NCBI GenBank assembly: GCA_964304625.1
Contig: OZ199839.1
Location: forward strand, 201,970-265,969
Length of the DNA stretch: 64,000 nucleotides
Reading direction: 5' to 3'
Origin: Kudoa neothunni
Lineage: Eukaryota; Animalia; Cnidaria
This document shows, one piece after another, positions 1,032-53,176 of the stretch (the first letter of the stretch is position 1; each line of letters opens with the position of its first letter). Made by a program: the position numbers and the translations under genes. The notes under the pieces were generated by a model, which had not been told where the DNA came from, made no database searches, and was given only the letters and a program-made list of their open reading frames with translations.

Positions 1032-4000
1032 TTAACTCTCACCGACGGAGCCCTATGGGTTATCGCAATAATAAGAGATTATCAAGAAAGTCGCGCGATT
1101 CACGTTTTAGTTATCCAGTTTTGTAAGTGTATGCCAACATATGAAAAATTTTGCAAAAACTTAATATTTTCATAGAAAAAAATTCCCCAAGAAGATAATT
1201 CAGATGCATCATTTTATGAGGATTGTGTGGAATATCCTGAGGACTTGGAGAATCAAAAAATGAACGATGACGACAATGATGGGAACCCAATTGAAATATC
1301 GACGTCTAAATCAGGATTTCAGTGGGAGTGTGGTTTAAAATTCAAAACAAGCATCAGTTTCCACAATTTTGTCAACTTTAATTCTGGCCCTATCGATGAT
1401 GCAAGCAATATCTCGGATATTATGTCATCAGTCATGCTGTTTTTTTTCTAATTTTGCATTAAAAAATACTATTGTATACGAATAAGTCTCGGCAATCCGT
1501 CGATCGTTATAACAGCACAAATGCAATAACAATGGAGGAATTGATTGCAGCTGGACGTGGTAATGGATCCAGAGCGGGGGTTATCAATGTGGGTTCCATA
1601 AACCTACAGTGATAAGAAAAATTTAATAATAACGCACGAAATCTGTACAGATTTTATCGTATGATGTCAGCGAATTTTCATTGATAGTTATGTTGGGTCT
1701 CGAGCCTTCCACGAATTGGCGCCAAAACGGAATCCCCGTTGCGGCAACAATTGGAAACCATGTCCTTCTTTATTCAAAGAGTATTTGGTCCCCGTTTCTC
1801 CATGAATTACACCACTTTCACCATTCCTTCGATTTGGTGAAGAAACGTGGGACCAATCTGCCCCTCAACATTGACCACATTAAGAAACTATCTTGCCATC
1901 GAAAGCGATGGTGCAATTTGTCAGAAATGAAGGCCGGACAACATCGGGATTTAGAGCCCCTCACCTTATTTTAACTAATGCCATATCTTGCTAGGACACT
2001 CTTTCATGCTTTTTCAATTAACTTTGTGTTTTCTTTTGGCGTTTGGCGCGTATATAACAAGCTAAAGTTTGCAACACTGGTGATGGCTGGCTTTTGTCGG
2101 TTAACTACGCACCAACCCACATGCAGGAAGATTGTGCTGCCGTGCTAATAACAAATATTTCTTCTATTCAATAAATTATTTTAACTACTTTTAAAGATAT
2201 ACGATGGATAGTTGGTTAAAAAAGATAAATAAAATAACATCTAAAGAAGACAATGAAACGAATATGCTTGCCAACAAATGATCTGCAAGGACTAATTTGA
2301 AAACTATGGAATACATTCCGTTTTATTCTGAACAGCAACCAGCCAAGAAAAACCACAAATACGATCCTCAATATATGTCATGACTTTACTGGTACTAGCG
2401 ATGAAGAAGCTCCTGACTCAATTTATTTACTTTGCCATACAAGATTAGCTAACAGTTTGCTGCCACCAGCAAAGTTGAAAATGCAACTGAAGCGTCATAT
2501 AAAGCTTCTTACCATATTTCTCTTCATACCGAAACTCACACTATTGGTGAATCATTGATAAAACTTGTGTCGAAAAATGTAGTTTCATGTATATTTGATG
2601 AAAAGTCTGCTCAAAAGGTTGAATCAATGTCTCTATCCAAGGATACGGTATCGAGGTGTATTGTTGATATTTCTGATGACATTAAAACGGAGCTTATTTT
2701 ACAATTGAATGCATATGGTGCTTACGCTTTGCAAATGGATGAATCTACAGATGTGGCTGGACTAACAATTCTACTCGTGTTTGTTAGATATGACTTCAAA
2801 AAACAATTGAGAAACATTTTCTTTTCTGAAAAAGTTTACAGCTTCGTACCGAAGGAAAAGATACATTTTATTGTGTTGATAATTATATAACAAAACATAG
2901 TATCGGCTGGGATAAATGCATTTCAGTGCGCACCGATGGAGCGAAGGCTATGATGGGAAAATTATCTGGCATTGTAACTAGAATAAAAAATTTCTCAAAA
3001 AACTGCAAGAATAATCACTTCATTCTTCACAGATACGCATTAGTGGCAACAAGAATTTCTGCTTCGTTAAAAATGGTTTTGGCGAAGTTGTGCAAATGAT
3101 CAATTTTATAAAAACTCGGCCATTACAATCAAGCGATTTTTCTTTTACATACAGAGGTTAGGTGGCTTTCAAGAGGAAATATAATGGTGAGAATGGTTGA
3201 ATTGTCCGAGAAATTAAGAAATAATATAGCTCTATCTCGTAAGTTGAAGTTCTGGCTGTTTTCCACTTCTTACTAAATTTCTACAAGAGTCTGAAATGGA
3301 ATTAGACACAGAGACGCCTGATGTAATTAAAGATCATCTTAACAGTTATGAATATTTCTTATTGAATATTTTCCTAACTTGGAGTGCAAAGAATATTATT
3401 GGGTACAAAATCCATTCACAATAAAAAAAACCAACAGGATTTCTAACAGAGGATTACGAGAAATTAATTGAAATCACATCCGATATTCAGTCAAAAGTTA
3501 AACTTGAAGAATATCCTAAAATATCTAAACAGACCATAAAAATACTTCCACCCTTTGCAACAACATGTTGGTGTGAATCAGGATTTTCGAGATATGCTGG
3601 CACGAAAACTAAGTATCGAAGCAGACTGGATGCTGCCCAGATATGAGAATCCAATTATCAAATATAAAACCAACTTTTCAGAGGATACTTAAGTCAAAAA
3701 AACAACTGCATTTATCTCATTAACATTTTATATTCCAATATATTGTGCTTTTTAAATTGTTTCTTTATTATAATATGTATTTTCTAATTCAATTTCGATA
3801 AATGTTACAAATACAATATTCTATTTACTATAATAAATATCAACCCATTAAATTTTGCTGAACAAATATTATAAGATAATTTAGACAAGGGTTCCATTCA
3901 AAAAAAAACTATTCGCCTGTTACACATATAACGATTGATGAGCGAATGGTAGGTTGTCGCTGACGTTAGTATGTCATATTTACTGAACGTTCAGCCATAC

Positions 4001-4340
4001 ATTGGAAAAATCGGAAACGTCAAAGAAAGTAAACAAGATGAAAGGTTTGTCAAGGATCTCATTAGTCTGTTTTATGGTAGTGGACGAGGATTAACCACCG
4101 ACAACTTTTTCACTTCCGTTCCTTTGGCCTTATTTTCGTTGTAGAGAAATACAACGTTCACTGGGAAGCTAAGGAAAAATAACAGATATATACCTGAAAT
4201 ACATCGAAACAACGCTAATCGTAATGAACTCTCCTCAAATTTTTGTTTCTGTGACAACTTGAAAATTGTGCCGTATGTTTCGAAGAAGAGTCATAATGTT
4301 TTTCTATTATCCAATGAATTTAAAGACAGTTAGGTTGAAC
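1032..4340 (+). mobile_element. Degenerate piggyBac element with a transposase pseudogene, interrupted by nested insertions
   Basis: TTAA-CTCTC terminus-like sequence at about 1032. Acidic N-terminal fragment with SKSGFQW at 1227-1451. After the insertions, 3905-4330 reads YSPVTHITIDERMVG, GRGLTTDNFFTSVPLA and TFTGKLRKN, which are piggyBac DDD-domain motifs broken by frameshifts and stops. Confidence 0.75.
2200..3900 (+). mobile_element. hAT Buster/Charlie-type (ZBED5/SCAND3-like) transposase pseudogene
   Basis: Fragments HTIGESLIK, SLSKDTVSRCI, ALQMDESTDVAG..LLVFVRY, TDGAKAMMGK, HTEVRWLSRG and PFATTCWCESGFS, with multiple frameshifts. Confidence 0.9.
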
Positions 4341-8907: not shown

Positions 8908-10294
8908 ATGAAGTTGGATCGCTGTGTTCGGACGTTCATAACTGAAGAACAGGTCAACACTGAAAATCTAGACTATCTAGGTATACTATCTAGAAAATTG
9001 GTCATACATGTAGGCTGGCAACGATAAAAACATAACAACCGGTTGTTGATAATCTATAGCAATTGGCCTAAGTTTGAACAACAACCTAAATATAAATGAT
9101 ATTTTTAGAAAATATCGAGTCCTGGGAATGCAAATTTGGCGAAAAAAGTCGTATTCACGAAATAGCGAGTTCATTAGGATTGACACAAAATGCGAGGGTA
9201 AGGAGCGATGGGATGTGATAGGCCTTTTAAATTTGTTAGGCTGTGCGTCCTAATCATAATATGAACTCATCCACGGGAAACAAGGAGAAATCCACACTGT
9301 TTACTGACCAAATAAAGAAATGGATGATGGCCACATCTAATGCAGATCTTGAAACTGTAAAGGATCTTGTGGGGAGTTATCCTGATCTTATCAATACAAA
9401 GGATCCACTATGGGTATGGTTAATTCTTATTTTTTCCATTTGTTAATATTAATTTTTTAGGGAGTAATTTCAACTATTTTTATGATACTAGTTAATTAAT
9501 ATTTATATATCTTTAGATGGTAAAATTAATTAATTGATTTAAATTGAAACAAAAATTGTAGACAGCATTGCATTGGGCTATTAGAAATGACGATTATTTG
9601 ATGGTGGAATATCTGTGTGATCACGAGGCTGATATAAACAAAAAATCTGTATAATATGATTATTGTTTAGTTTGTATTTTGAATTAATATTTAGTTTACG
9701 GTAAGTTATTTGTGGAAGATAGTTTATTGGGATTAATTTGATTGTGGATTAAGGGGGAAACCCCACTGCATTTAGCCGCTCGGCTGAGCCGACCAGTTAT
9801 TTTTCGTTATCTCACAACTTTTTCAAGTAACTCGATTCATTTATATGATTTTATGTAGCTTACCATTTGTAGATTTGGATTACAGTACTCTGGATAATCG
9901 AGGCCATAAGGCGGAGGTCATTTGTACAAAACACAACACCAACCGATTTAAATATTTCCAAATGCTCTGAGGATACCAATTCTCAAGTGTCGTCAAACTT
10001 TGAAATTGATCTCTCTGAGATATATTCTAAAAGTTCTACTTATTTTGACCTTAGATATTCGCCCGAATGTTCCAAATCTCGTTTGATAACGGTGGTCAGA
10101 GATTTAAAAGTTATGGATTAATTTTTATTTGAATGATTTAAAGATGGCAAATGAAAACCTCAACCACTCACAAACAATCTAAACCATCCTTACAGTTACA
10201 GTACACGAAAAGTGTGGATGATCGAAAGAATGGAGGCTTCAAAGGCTTGTTTAATAGATACCGTGAGAAATTCACCAAAAAATCCACCATATGA
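8908..10294 (+). CDS. SOWAH-like ankyrin-repeat protein, paralog 1 (spliced, with microexons; 5' and 3' exons tentative)
   Basis: Spliced translation KKWMMATSNADLETVKDLVGSYPDLINTKDPLW-G-M-TALHWAIRND...ADINKKS-FT-GETPLHLAA...LDNRGHKAE. GT-AG introns of 42-53 nt in the core. Confidence 0.75.
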
Positions 10295-10575: not shown

Positions 10576-11535
10576 ATGAACACTGAATCACAAGTTAGTC
10601 TCCTCACAGTAAAAAGTAACTCCAGGAATATGCTAGCTACTATATCAATGGAATCAATATTTTCGAAAAAGGTTTATTTTACAGCTAATTGATATAAACT
10701 TGTTTATTGCATCTAGCTCAACATGCTGGAGTATGGGGAGAGATACGATTTTCTGGACAAAAAATGGATGGTGCTTTGCGCCGAGAACGACATCAAAGAG
10801 GTGAGAAATTTCCTCACTATTTATCCCGATTATATCAACTTCAAAGATCCTGTGTGGGTGAGGTCTAATAATAATAATAATGTATTTTAATACAAAAAAA
10901 TAAAGGGAGTATTTCTTTTACTATTTCGACAGCTTTCACTTTTATAGATGGTAATATAATGGTTCACTATATTATTTCATTGTTATTCTGCATAGACTAT
11001 TCTCCATTGGGCTGTGAAGGAACACAACATTGAACTTGTTCGAATGCTACTTCTTGCTGGGCTGATATCAACCCAACTGATGTAGGTACCATTTTGAAAC
11101 GGAATAATTGTAATAATAATTTTTTTTATAATTTAGAAACAAGTATTTTGTATCAACCGTTGAACGTCTATTTAGATACATGTCTAGGGAAGAACACCAC
11201 TTCATTATTCTGTCATTTATAGATTCCAGGAAATAGAAGAAATTCTGACGTCCTCACCTGGTATATCAATTAAAAATTGATAATTAATGAGTCAAAAATC
11301 TAAATTATTTAATGTTATCGTAATGAAAATTTTTGGATAAACGATAAAATTATAGATTGTGACTCTCGAATAGAAGATTTCAACTCAAATAAACCGAAAC
11401 AATACTCACAACTGAGAAAAATGTCGACTAAAAGTTATTACTGTAACATCCCACTCTAAATAAACCAAAGGGACGCCACAAAAAACTGAAGAAATTCTGC
11501 AAAATACTCTCCCTACGGAGAAGTCAAACAAATAG
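10576..11535 (+). CDS. SOWAH-like ankyrin-repeat protein, paralog 2 (one apparent 1-nt frameshift at about 11060)
   Basis: KKWMVLCAENDIKEVRNFLTIYPDYINFKDPVW-G-M-TILHWAVKEH...-KQ-GRTPLHYS, with the same core intron positions as paralog 1. Confidence 0.72.
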
Positions 11536-15192: not shown

Positions 15193-18100
15193 TCATTTTG
15201 CCAAAATCTCAAGGATTTCATCTTGATTAAGCGACTCTTTCAATTCGAGTTGTTTCACCAACTAAAAAAAGTATTATTAATGCATAATAGAAACAGATAA
15301 TAATCAATTACCTGGAAATATTTAACTTCATTATCGGTGATAATTTTGAGAGTCTTTTTGTAGGCCTCTTCTATCAACTCTAATACGCGTGAATCCAATT
15401 TGGTGGCCAATGATTTGTCGAACAAATGAGCATGACCGATATCGGGAACCAAACTATTTTCCAACGAAGGAAAACAGGCATTTTGCATAACTGTATTGTC
15501 CATACCATAGACACCAATCTAAAAGAATTGGTATTAATTGATTTTTTTGACGGTAAAACTAGTTGATACATATGAATAGGCGAGTCTGGTAACTTTCTGT
15601 AGATCGTCCATTGCGCCGGTTGTTATTTTACCGATAAATTTGTGTTCCGCTACTCTTCCTCCAAGTAGTGCAACCATTTGTGACATCAGCTAAATCACGT
15701 TATTACAGGCGTATATTAGTGAATGCGAAAAAAATTATAAAAGTTTTGATAAGAAAAATAATTAATTTTTAGACAGCGGGATGAAATGAGATAGCAAGAG
15801 AAACGCTCACCTCACGACGAGTGACCATGTATTGATCTTTGGGTATGAACAAGTTGTAACCAAGCGCTTTACCTCTTGGAACAATAGATATCTATACGCG
15901 CATTTAGACGATAACACAATGAAATCGAAGAATAGACAAACCTTTCCAATGCGCGTAGGATCAGCTCCAAAATAACTAGCAATAGCATGACCGGATTCGT
16001 GGATCGCAATAGTATGCTTCTCTTCTGGGGAATATTTTTTGAGATTGCTACTGCCAGCAACAACCCGATCAATAGCGTTATCAAAATCGCTCGGCTGCAC
16101 AAATGTAGCGTTGTTTCTAACAGCCAACATTGCAGCTTCATTACAAATATTAGCTATATCAGCACCACTGAAACTTGCAGTAGAATCAGCTAGTCTTGAG
16201 GCAAGTTGTTTCAGTTTAGTAGTATCATTTCGGTCGATAAGTTTTATTTGTTTTAGGTAGTGTTCAAACAGCTCCTCACGACCTTTCTTATCAGGTTCGG
16301 TCAAATGTATGTGTCGATCAAAACGACCAGGGCGAAGTAATGCCTTGTCGATGGAATCAAGTCGATTTGTAGCCGCTATGACAACCACTCTACTGTCGGT
16401 TGTAAAACCATCCATCTCAACTAGAATCTGATTGACAGTGGAATCGTTTTCGCGATGACCAGCCAATGATTTTCCCTCGCGACTTGTGGCTATGGAATCG
16501 ATCTCATCGATGAAAATAATGCATGGAGCGTTCGATTTTGCCACCTTGAATAAAGATCTAATGTGGTAGGCCCCCATTCCAACCAAACTTTGAACGAAAT
16601 CCGAACCAGTTGTCTGATACAATGGTACACCACATTCATTGGCTAATGCTTTAGCAAGGAGTGTTTTACCAGTACCCGGAGGGCCATACAATATGGCGCC
16701 CTAACAAGAAAAATTTTACTGATTTATACAATAATCTTAAGCTAATTTAGTGATTGTCTAATGGAATGGTATAACTTAGAATATTGTGACGGTTTGTACA
16801 AAATAAACCTTTAATTGCATGTCAACATGGACGAATGCCATTTATTCTTTCTATATCTCCTGTTTATATAGATATTTCTATTTCTATAAATGGATAATTT
16901 TTCGTTTATTTTAATGTTCCAAAAATGATTTAATATTAAATGATGCCATGAGCATGTGTTTTATTTAATCTTCGTACCATCCACTTATCGGTTACATATA
17001 CGATCGAACCTAGATTATCCGGAAGATATTTTAAATTTTATTTCGATTTTATTGAAATTACGTCTCGATAAATGTTCGATTATCTGGAATCTCGGAAACC
17101 GTAACAACTATTTAATCATAATTTGGGATAAAAATACCGCCAATCACCGTACGACATATAGCGCATATAGCAATGTAATATTTAACCCTTTCGTACCCCA
17201 ATTTTTTATTTTATTTCATGATTTTTTATATATATTACAGGAACTCAATATTTTAAATTGTATGATTTTATTGTGATAGAAATTAATTAGACGTATAGTT
17301 TCAGCTGTTTTTAATGTGGGTACTAGAGTGGACATTTGGCATGAAAGGGTTAAAACAAAAATATTTATAGGTTAATTGTTTATAAGTTTTTCTTTAAAAC
17401 CTAAGTTAAGCACTCAGTTCTTATATAAATTTCGACTATATCTGAACATATGCTCTTATGTATATTAAACAAAAATTAATTATCGATTATTTAAAAAAGT
17501 ATACTGCTCCTCTCCCATAGTTGTGTATTGTTTTTGGTTTTACCTTCCGAGCGCTTCAAATTCGACTATACACTTATACACTTAGTGCTTTTGGGATCTA
17601 TTAGACCCACTTTTTTCTTTAATATTATGAATGTAAATAATTTTTAAAATTTCATCATGCAAAAATAAAAAAATTCTATCGACAAAATAGCACAATATTG
17701 GCAAAAAACATGATTGGCGAAAGTTTTCCGATACCACCCAAATAATGTTTAGGGCTTATATATTCTTGTTAAATAAATTTTTACGAAATATTATTTGAGA
17801 TTAACTCTCGAAAATATTAAAAATAATATTTTATCAATTATTTCATATATAATTAATTAGATTAAAGCATTACGACACAGCAAATAGTTATCAACAAAAT
17901 GGACTAAAAAGGTCTCCAACGTTCAACTTAATCACCCCTACAAATTTAAACATACGAATAACAGCGCGCGCAAAAATCTTTTTATTTAAATCCCTTTGGT
18001 TTGTATTTCTAGACTGCACACAATTATCATTGCTGGCTCGTAATATTAAAACTGACCCATACAAGTTTAATCTTAGGAATGGGACGCACGCGCAAATCAA

Positions 18101-19546
18101 TATTTGTATTTCATATGATTTATTTGAATGTGCTATTTTTACTGTATATGTTTCAGAATCTGCTGCCGTTAATTTATTCGGGCTCAATATCACATACATA
18201 TGACAATAAATGATCCACAATAGTCGTAATAATTAGCATTCCAAAAGTTTAATCTAATTTATATTCGCGCATGCGCGGGTAGTGAAAAATTTCGATTTAA
18301 AATTCCCGCCTCGCAACATTTTACGAATAAAATACAAATAAACTGCACAAATAATTTTATTTTATTGGACACTTGAAAGTGTAGATGGATTTAAATAAAA
18401 AATAAAACTCAACTAAAATTAATCCCCCCAAGAGTTATTTCAAAAATTAATGGCCATTCGAATTTAATAATAATAATAATTATGGTATTATTAAATTGTA
18501 AAAAAATGTTAATACCTTTGGAGTTTTTGCTCCCATTTTTTTGTAGTACTCGTTGTTGGTAAGAAAATCCGAAAATTCCTTCACCTCGATTTTGGCTTCA
18601 TTGCATCCAAGCACATCACTAAATTTCACGTTGGTTTTGGTTGGTTGGTACATTGGATTTTCGGAGAAACGGCCCTATAACATAAAACACATCGATTACA
18701 TTCGGAATAAATCAAACAGCCAAGCTACAAGTATGTCTTGAAATTTGAATGCACTTTTCGTCCTCGGGAAAAACATGAACCCCAATATAATTCCCATTAC
18801 CATAACGGAATAGTACAAATAACTTAAAACCATAGAAACCGCTGTTGGTCTAAATCAATATCAATGTTGACATCGACAAAAACACACATCACATACAAAC
18901 TATTATCGTTATAGACAAAGCTCAAATTCTTAAGGAGATCCACTTGTTCGTTGGCCATTTGGAAAATTTTATCGTAAAAGCTGTTCAAACTGCCCAAACT
19001 GATGGGTATCATTTCGCCCATTCGAGACGATAACGCGTCATTTACAACAGCGAAGCATTTACCAGAAGAACTGTTTATTATCAATGTGACTTTTCTACCT
19101 TTTCGAATGTAATCGTCGACAAAGTTTGTCCATGTCATTTCTTGTTGATCGGCATTATCTCTGAGCGAATTCAAAAATCCAAACACACCAGCCCCAATCA
19201 TAACAACAAGAAAACGTCCTATTAGGGGCATTTTTTCACGAATTTTCTGTTGTGGTTCATCGAATTCATCCTTGTTGTAATCTTGGGGTTTGTCATTATT
19301 ATTGCTGCGATTTGTGGTAGTTTTATCATTTGAAGATTGATTTTTTGTAGAAAAATCTTTCTTGTCTTTGGTCTCACTGCCGGGAACATTATTTTGAATT
19401 CGATTTTGACTACATTTCACATAGCGACTTATTCCAATCACATATTTATCTGTTAGATATGAGGCTGTGAATAGATTGGGCTGGGGTTTATATTGCAAAT
19501 TTTTTAAATGGTGCAACCATTTTGTTGTTGAACTCAATCTGAGCAT
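15193..19546 (-). CDS. AFG3L2: Mitochondrial m-AAA metalloprotease (AFG3L2/paraplegin family), spliced
   Basis: Basic presequence, TM segments, Walker A GPPGTGKT, Walker [16 protein letters not shown]...[10 protein letters not shown] and HESGH zinc motif. A 1815-nt intron spans 16701-18515; stop at 15193-15195. AFG3L2 versus SPG7 is not resolved. Confidence 0.9.
17186..17349. mobile_element. piggyBac MITE in the AFG3L2 intron
   Basis: TTAA|CCCTTTCGTACC...GGCATGAAAGGG|TTAA. Confidence 0.8.
17541..17890. mobile_element. Terminal fragment of piggyBac family B
   Basis: Colinear high similarity to 57072-57410 (CCTTCCGAGCGC...AGTGCTTTTG). Confidence 0.8.
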
Positions 19547-43668: not shown

Positions 43669-45640
43669 ATGATTACATTACAACTAGTGTTACTATTTTC
43701 AAGTAATAATTGTATATTTCATTGTAATTATTTGGTTAAAATCAATAGTAAGATGCTTCGCATACATTAATTCCGGCTTTTTGGATGATTCGTTTCGAAA
43801 TGATCAAAACCTCAAACTAAATGGTGACAGAGATTATGTTACAATTCATAAAATCAAGTGTACGTATAATCAAAATATGCCCTTTAATCAATATAAGGAA
43901 GATAAATACAATTATGATACAGAGGAGAATAAAATTTGTGATATCATCAATTTACGCATACTAACAGAGAAAAAGCTGATCAAACCTGAAACCGTTTTTC
44001 CGAAAGAAATAAGTTTCTTCTCGCAAATGACCTCAACCTTTAAATTCTTGAAAAAGTCACAGTTTGTCACTGAAAATTTCCCAGTTACCAAAAATGTATT
44101 AAACAGTTATTATAATCAACTTGATCAATTAATGTCGGAAGTTTCTCTTTCCAAAACCGCTTTGAACAAATTGAAAAATGATAACAAAAATTTAATGAAA
44201 AGAGTAAGTAATGCTATTGTGGCTGCATATGATTTGAGGGATAAAAAACAAGAATTGAAAAGATATTTTGAATCAATCAAAAAATCGATAGAATTTTGTA
44301 AAGGCGAACATAAAACTGACTATCTTGGTTATAGAAATATTGTTAGCAGTTTTAATTTAAAAAACAAACTCGACGGATTGTTTAATGAGATGACTCGTAT
44401 TATAAGAAATATTCACAATGTCTGTGATGAAACAAAAAGTGTTCCTCGAGCGGATCCTGTAATTTCCGAGACGTATTCAAAATTTGTTGAGATAGTTAAC
44501 AAACTGAATAATATTCGCAGTGGTGTGCAACAAAATATTGAAGAGTTGAAAAAGAAAATCCGAATGTATGAAACATGGAAAAATGAAATTACGGGAGTTC
44601 AAATATTGAGATTCAATGATGAAATGAATAGAATAAGGAATTACATTGGGGTTGTTGATAATTTACATGCTACGGTTGAAAGGGAAACTAGCACAATTCA
44701 AGGACTAATTTCCAATGTGTCTCAACAACTTGTTCAATTTCCTTCGGAAAGTCGAGGGGTGCTCGAAATAACTATCACCCTATTGAATAAACATTTAAGC
44801 GACCAACAGAATGTGAAAAGCCGTACCAACAATATAAAACAACTAGTTGAACAGTTGGATAATCCCATTACAGAGATCAAATCAAAGCGTGCCGAAATTC
44901 TTAACCAAATAAATGTTTCTATCGAAAACATGAAATTAGCCGTTGAAGTGCTTGAAGTTATCAGAGACATAGAAAACAAACTCTCTCTTACATATGAGCA
45001 TCACAGTTTAGTGAAGTTGAGAGCTTACAATAGATCTCCCGGGGATTATTCAGCCGATGCCGATGCAGAAAGTATTACCAAGTATGTGGAGCTTTTCAAA
45101 CAAAAGAAGAATCTAATTGAACAAACATTAATTGATACCCATAGCCACCATATGGATGTCAATACATATTATAATCATTTGATAGACAATGGCAAAAAAT
45201 TGGAGGAGCAATTCAACTCACATAAATCTAAATCAATCCCTGAACTAAACGTTGTTAAAGATATTCCAAAACTAGAAGCTGTTCCAGATCTGTTCACAGA
45301 CGACGACGGAGATGTAACGGGAGAAGAGCCAAACACTGAGGAAGGATTAACACCCCCAGAAGGAAACAATCCTAAATATACTATACCTAAGAAAAAGAAT
45401 GCAGACCCTCAAAATTCGGTCCCAATAAAAGAAACTAATCAGAGGGAAATTTCTGATTACAATCAATCCTCTGTAACTCCAACAATACAATTGAATAATG
45501 GAAAGAGTCAAACCAATGTAACTGCGTTGTCTAGTGTGATTGTGGTGGTAATAATAGCCTTGGTTGCTGGAGGTTTCGTTTACCACAGATCGTGGAGAAG
45601 ATCCCGTGTCTTCATGAAACATCCAAATGATTTGGCCTAA
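43669..45640 (+). CDS. Orphan type-I membrane protein (signal peptide, long coiled coil, P/T/E-rich stalk, TM, short tail), about 641 aa
   Basis: Exon 43669-43702 plus intron 43703-43748 gives MITLQLVLLFSIRCFA in frame with the 619-aa ORF. C-terminal TM SSVIVVVIIALVAGGFVY is followed by basic HRSWRRSR. Confidence 0.82.
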
Positions 45641-52128: not shown

Positions 52129-53176
52129 GGCTATTCTTTACAAAACGGGACTACAGTCTGAAACTTTCATCGCGCGCCCGGAAAATAGAAAACTTCAGGA
52201 GGAATTTTGATTTGGAGAATATTGATTCCATCAATATGATGGAATATGCATTTTTTAGGATTGACACAATTTATACCATCAAAACATTGCAGAATCTTGG
52301 TCTAATTTCATCAGAGAAAACGTGTATTTGTGGGACGATGATGCATCTCATATCAAATAAAAGTTGCCAAGATCTGTTTTTCTTCCGATGCCCGGGTTGT
52401 TTGAAGAAGCAAAATCTACGAGTTTGATCAATATTTCAGCATTCTAAACTGCCACTGTGGAAACTATTTGTATTTTTCCTCGTAAAAATTCAATTCAGCA
52501 AGGTTACCTACGAAGAAATACAAAGGCACGTCGGAATCCTCTCTTCAAAAGCAATATGTGATTGGTCTGAATTATTAAGGAGTATTATCACATTGAAGAT
52601 TACTGACGAGAGAAAAAAAATTGGCGATGCAAATGTCGTTGTCCAGATCGATGAAACTGCGGTGACTAACCGAAAATATAATGTTGGTAGACTGTTAAAA
52701 ACCCAGCAATATTGGATTGTTGGTGGTATAGATGAGGAAGGTGAATGTTTTTTTGAACTGACGAAGAGAAGAAACAGCTCTGTATTGGAAAAAATTATTC
52801 TCGATAATGTTGAAGAGAATTCTGTTATCTGGGCTGATAAATGGAGAGGCTATAATCACCTGAACGATTTAGGATTTTTTCACGATACAGTCTGTCACAA
52901 ATATTCGTTTATTTCTGGTACTGGTGTACACACAAATAAGATCGAAACTACGTGGGGAGGATTTAAAAGGAAGTACCGAAATATTACAAATAAAAATGAA
53001 GAGTCATTATATGACTTCATTTCGGATCATATATTCCGTAAAAAATATAGAGGCGTCGAACTTAGCACTTTCTTTAAAGAAATTATGAATAATTATTTAT
53101 TATAATTTATCGTGTTGTTGTTTCGCGATTTCCTCCGAAAGTTTCCGACTGTAGTCCCGTTTTGTAAAGAATAGCC
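52129..53176 (+). mobile_element. Merlin (IS1595/IS1016-related) DNA transposon, full length, with one in-frame TGA
   Basis: 40-bp TIRs GGCTATTCTTTACAAAACGGGACTACAGTC with one mismatch, and an 8-bp TSD AAATATTT. CxC..CxxC zinc ribbon; DDE motifs VQIDET, IWADKWRGY and HTNKIETTWG. Confidence 0.95.

Follow-up and report, generated by a model that had tools for sequence, protein, structure and literature searches.

The hammer of evidence on a small ankyrin-repeat gene family of the myxozoan Kudoa neothunni falls on two consecutive exons of a single codon each, which, judging from the genomic sequence of three diverged paralogs, are very probably both part of the main mRNA, constitutively included and joined stepwise through recognition across the introns. 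In these short genes (named here A, B and C, with a duplicate copy), the hairpin before the second repeat would be encoded as W/G/M/T, with three phase-0 introns lying in three consecutive codon gaps and leaving between them two exons of one codon. Such exons would be structural parts of the protein rather than a regulatory switch, supplying the conserved Gly found two places before Thr in the ankyrin motif. A pair of neighbouring 3-nt exons comes near what splicing can physically handle and, if included in mRNA, it would provide the first microexons described in a myxozoan, as far as literature searches reach.

Layout of the gene family

The window analysed here is a whole stretch of 64,000 nt of K. 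neothunni DNA with a G+C content of about 30%, where gene A is followed 1.4 kb downstream by its tandem paralog B (microexon span 10858-10995). A sequence-only reading had proposed for gene A the exons GGA and ATG, with GT-AG flanks and introns of 47, 53 and 42 nt, and its coordinates turned out to be exact on re-reading the DNA (Table 1). Both exons are internal, do not exceed 27 nt and have canonical GT-AG borders on each side, which places them among microexons by size. The surrounding introns, all GT..AG, are 83-86% A+T, and the GGA and ATG units are the only ones of the form AG-N(1-12)-GT in the 148-nt span 9414-9561. The candidate frame further upstream (9096-9197) gave no Pfam match.

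Table 1. Features of the ankyrin-repeat genes (window positions unless another locus is given)
Gene	Feature	Position	Strand	Remarks
A	Candidate further-upstream exon	9096-9200		…SRIHEIASSLGLTQNAR; by eye R3H-like
A	Upstream exon	9240-9413	+	degenerate first ankyrin repeat, ends KDPLW; last codon TGG
A	Intron, 47 nt, phase 0	9414-9460	+	GT..AG
A	3-nt exon GGA (Gly)	9461-9463	+	
A	Intron separating the two 3-nt exons, 53 nt	9464-9516	+	
A	3-nt exon ATG (Met)	9517-9519	+	
A	Intron, 42 nt	9520-9561	+	
A	87-nt exon, starts TALHW	9562-9648	+	ankyrin repeat from T, Pfam Ank positions 4-31
A	6-nt exon (Phe-Thr)	9695-9700	+	flanking introns 46 and 53 nt; gives 33-residue period
A	Exon, starts GETPLH	9754-9826	+	Pfam Ank positions 2-21; 3' end inferred
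A	Probable next exon (LDYSTLDNRGHK...)	9873-9970	+	inferred boundaries only
B	Upstream exon, ends KDPVW	10723-10857	+	38% identity to that of gene A
B	3-nt exon GGA (Gly)	10906-10908	+	after 48-nt intron
B	3-nt exon ATG (Met)	10948-10950	+	introns 39 nt before, 45 nt after
B	Ankyrin exon (TILHW...)	10996-11081	+	86 nt; one G short in G run near 11058
B	6-nt exon (Lys-Gln)	11137-11142	+	
B	Last exon, starts GRTPLH	11188-11280	+	runs to stop codon
C	6-nt exon (KN)	L005:2010-2015		

The same order is found in paralog C, on contig C3, which reads KDPLW, 46 nt, GGG, 96 nt, ATG, 113 nt, ACLHW. In their flanking exons, B and C share no more than 27-38% identity with gene A. The introns of A and B, compared one to one, show no more similarity than shuffled sequences, a comparison made for this pair, the introns of C having different lengths. 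The Gly codon is GGA, GGA and GGG in A, B and C, respectively, and the Met codon is ATG in the three, so the sole change is synonymous. A layout common to such diverged genes indicates that the splice sites and the two codons have been kept while the surrounding sequence changed. As to its origin, the layout may derive from intron gain at neighbouring codons or from the capture of intronic AG-NNN-GT units. Thirteen of the 15 introns counted measure 39-55 nt; the published assembly of K. neothunni (40.2 Mb, N50 of 12.0 Mb, three chromosomes and a circular mitochondrial contig, 30.41% G+C) has a median intron of 49 nt (PMC12239612).

Another copy of genes A and B lies 32 kb upstream, within a 99.8% identical block of at least 29.6 kb (window 365-30000 against C2:170000-200000), which may represent either a recent duplication or a leftover, unpurged haplotype. 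This second copy does not count as independent evidence for the layout.

The ankyrin hairpin and the probable inclusion of both exons

The 87-nt exon of gene A matches the Pfam Ank model (PF00023) with 31.1 bits, above the cut-off of 21.1, and the distance from Thr to Thr is 33 residues with the 6-nt exon and 31 without it, so that both the domain match and the period are those of an ankyrin-repeat protein. Since the match of this exon starts at position 4 of the model and that of the next repeat at position 2, which is its Gly, the 87-nt exon comes without the G-x that the triplets encode. The intron before Gly occupies the same place in both repeats, and the next hairpin contains a 6-nt exon in all three genes (FT, KQ and KN in A, B and C). 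The proposal of the sequence-only reading that the one-codon exons would supply the G-x preceding T-x-L-H is thus backed by the three diverged paralogs, by the Ank match from position 4 and by the shuffles described below.

Comparison with natural repeats gives a more nuanced picture. Gly stands two positions before Thr in 26 of the 35 natural ankyrin repeats retrieved, and it is obtained at that position only if both 3-nt exons are included. The modelled D-P-L-W-G-M-T exceeds by one residue the commonest natural spacing, D-x-x-G-x-T (27 of 35 repeats), and judged by length alone a single 3-nt exon would be the better fit. On the other side stands ANKEF1, the best PDB match of the upstream exons, albeit a weak one (E=0.035). 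In the numbering of ANKEF1, the distance that separates Pro (in D-P) from Met (in M-V) is 18 residues, and the model gives 16, 17 or 18 with none, one or both exons; this distance needs both of them, the match being weak and the correspondence of the Met read by eye. The hairpin longer by one residue fits ANKEF1 in this respect, whereas the Kudoa proteins are short and do not reach its length. SOWAH and ANKRD40-type ankyrin proteins have a D-x-x-x-G-x-T/S hairpin motif, and SOWAH is a putative label for the gene; SOWAH proteins carry an N-terminal winged-helix domain. None of the searches retrieved a SOWAH sequence. Protein searches were performed exon by exon: the upstream exon of gene A retrieved only generic ankyrin proteins among 1.84 billion representatives, and neither a three-exon alignment nor the last exon of paralog C gave any database match.

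These same data bear on the possibility that the 3-nt exons are real but alternative, with much of the mRNA skipping one or both of them and the hairpin length tuned by stage or resulting from noisy splicing, which we regard as improbable. All four splice paths stay in frame, so frame alone does not force inclusion, and a form with a single 3-nt exon would show the commonest D-to-T spacing of 5; moreover, long introns exist in the K. neothunni genome and the acceptor of the Gly exon of gene B is purine-rich. Against it, forms with a single 3-nt exon have the Gly of position -2 displaced or missing. The genome gave no match at E<=1 to the SRRM_C domain (PF15230) of the known animal microexon switch, a weak argument given the exon-by-exon search and the fast evolution of this genome, and it does contain a gene with multiple FF domains of the PRP40/TCERG1 type. 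The presence of the latter together with no detectable SRRM_C is compatible with constitutive, unregulated inclusion, and no proof of it. A point against the inclusion of both exons in the main mRNA is that myxozoans have been reported to retain introns often (PMC12239612).

Proposed recognition across short introns

In constitutive inclusion of both exons, the major spliceosome would recognise each short AT-rich intron across the intron itself, a mode for which exon length does not matter. During splicing U1 pairs over the last three bases of the exon and the acceptor complex reads AG plus the following base, so a 3-nt exon is too short to seat the upstream acceptor complex and the downstream U1 together. 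Because these binding sites overlap, the removal of neighbouring introns would have to proceed in turn, and at each step the tiny exon would become part of a longer one. With only one codon on each side of it, the middle intron leaves no room for exon definition, and the order in which the introns are removed would have to be constrained. Recognition across the intron is the default in animals for introns near 49 nt. In this line, microexons of C. elegans with introns near 49 nt need no help from PRP-40, which was read as default intron definition (PMC8378409).

The idea of a strict intron definition, as advanced by the sequence-only reading, went too far: the ATG exon of paralog C lies between introns of 96 and 113 nt, and an FtsH/AFG3-type AAA protease gene of the window (15196-19546, minus strand) has an intron of about 1.8 kb. 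For the same reasons, the argument that a single intron of 148 nt would be too long was dropped. A relative whose protease is 79% identical, with a short intron at the place of the 1.8-kb one, was found in Logan run SRR33849685, which probably holds DNA of a related myxozoan. No ortholog of the ankyrin genes from a second species was found; the 2.3-kb contig of this relative stops short of them.

The AG-NNN-GT units could also be regarded as recursive ('ratchet') splice points whose three bases are not kept in the mRNA, and it is true that the internal acceptor-donor pairs are conserved while the intron sequence is not. This is very improbable, since in known recursive sites AG is directly followed by GT and the introns that contain them exceed 10 kb (PMC13149111), whereas here we find three bases and spans of 138-261 nt. 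Moreover, the bases that follow are GG or AT, so no donor would be rebuilt at the junction, and the codons are conserved as Gly and Met.

Equally hard to sustain is a relic layout, in which dying paralogs, be it some of the copies or all of them, no longer make spliced mRNA. It could be argued from the 1-nt deletion in the G run of the window copy of gene B, frame-shifted near 11058, and from the 5' end of gene A, which was not placed. However, the upstream duplicate of gene B is intact, with an ankyrin exon of 87 nt in open frame, and in the stretch compared the window and the upstream block differ by homopolymer indels only, a pattern to be expected when long reads are of low coverage. To maintain splice sites and frames between introns that have lost all similarity would furthermore need a long period of selection.

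Chance occurrence of AG-NNN-GT words within one ordinary 148-nt intron has a negligible probability. Such words are common genome-wide (about 2,000 with a 3-nt spacer and 1,900 with a 4-nt spacer), but three diverged paralogs have an ordered pair encoding the same amino acids, and chance as its origin was largely refuted by 20,000 dinucleotide-preserving shuffles per span, in which no intron could be shorter than 30 nt. The succession of AG-GGN-GT and AG-ATG-GT appeared 0 times for A, 0 for B and 3 for C, a frequency of at most 1.5e-4 per paralog, with B and C as the real tests of chance because the copy of gene A was chosen after the fact. This figure, the three paralogs and the synonymous GGA/GGG change together characterize a conserved microexon pair. 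Any two 3-nt units were obtained in 0.12% (A), 0.15% (B) and 1.1% (C) of the shuffles. Beyond what the shuffles required, the donors are GTA[AT] in six out of six cases, compared with 19% of the GTs of the window, and the acceptors are TAG in five out of six, compared with 28% of the AGs. One 6-nt unit is not rare in shuffles (4-19%), so the support for this exon comes from the 33-residue period and its presence in all three genes.

Known microexons and extent in the genome

Exons of 3 nt and adjacent microexons are already known in fungi, plants and animals, and the Kudoa pair is an extreme variant of them. In the intron-rich fungus Coprinopsis cinerea, long reads confirmed 27 exons of 3 nt, distributed over 26 genes, and exons of 3 nt or less are known in 89 genes, which, as in Kudoa, are ordinary coding genes where annotation had missed them; the sections consulted describe no two successive 3-nt exons (PMC12230235). 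The gene models of fungi could well contain pairs of 3+3 nt. Plant microexons of 1-15 nt are conserved, mostly included and required for protein domains, as is probably true of the Kudoa pair, and comprise 1-nt exons and a validated adjacent pair of 5 and 12 nt in rice, the accessible sections of that work describing no 3+3 pair (PMC8831610). By analogy, the Kudoa exons appear to work like these constitutive fungal and plant microexons.

Among animals, C. elegans shares with Kudoa its microexons within introns near 49 nt (PMC8378409), but there the microexons of this bilaterian are single, whereas in Kudoa two one-codon exons share one intron. The neural microexons dependent on SRRM3/4 in vertebrates and other bilaterians can also be of 3 nt and keep the frame; they are tissue-regulated cassettes, in contrast with residues of a conserved motif in a genome with no SRRM_C detected. 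The MEG genes of Schistosoma, another animal parasite, also carry runs of tiny exons, mostly multiples of three, but they amount to 10-20 per gene and account for the bulk of a secreted protein, with introns of 0.1-5 kb, a signal peptide and variation by exon skipping (10.1101/2023.06.21.545858). Each of the Kudoa genes differs from MEGs in having three such exons, introns near 45 nt within a range of 39-113 nt, and an ankyrin domain. Word searches, with an incomplete coverage of the literature, found no report of a 3+3 exon pair or of any myxozoan microexon.

The gene models of K. neothunni were built from protein hints, with very few RNA reads mapped (PMC12239612), and exons of this kind are therefore likely to be missing from them. 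A genome scan suggested by the sequence-only reading revealed no large hidden class of 3-nt exons. The AG-short-GT pattern was found 2,036 times with a 3-nt spacer and 1,909 times with a 4-nt spacer, the former not being the richer relative to reversed controls, and the strict tandem 3+3 pattern occurred at 8 places, gene A and its duplicate accounting for two, compared with 3 in the 4+4 control and 19 in the reversed one; some dozens of cases would escape a count of this kind. On present evidence, the layout is confined to this small family, with one further gene as a possible addition. This candidate lies at C3:3203877-3204057, where an ankyrin exon (Pfam Ank 4-32) is followed by some 40-45 nt, AG-ATA-GT, an intron-like stretch of 39 nt and AG-CAC-GT. 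The strict tandem match after this exon (C3:3204005-3204057), known from coordinates and a short match only, suggests a second putative 3+3 pair (Ile, His) in another ankyrin gene of C3, at the place where A-C have one 6-nt exon. This gene gave no match to the upstream exon of genes A-C.

A broader and rather unlikely extension is that splicing in myxozoans relies so entirely on intron definition that their genes regularly carry unannotated chains of one-codon exons, some of the short deletions and lost motifs reported for myxozoan proteins being in fact missed microexons. In a more practical sense, three natural paralogs with introns of 39-113 nt offer a compact and portable minigene to study intron definition and the order of splicing in an animal.

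Other features were observed in the same DNA. At C2:5425800-5426748 only the 3' part of the small-subunit rRNA gene was found (model positions 1158-1823), with an abrupt end next to AT-rich DNA; the search used a stricter mode and may have missed further copies. Decayed transposase-like stretches occur at window positions 2300-4330 and 52593-53105, which by eye look hAT/ZBED-like, piggyBac-like and Merlin/IS1595-like. Finally, an open frame of 619 amino acids (window 43781-45640), whose body is coiled-coil-like and whose C-terminal part has a hydrophobic segment, resembles an orphan surface protein.
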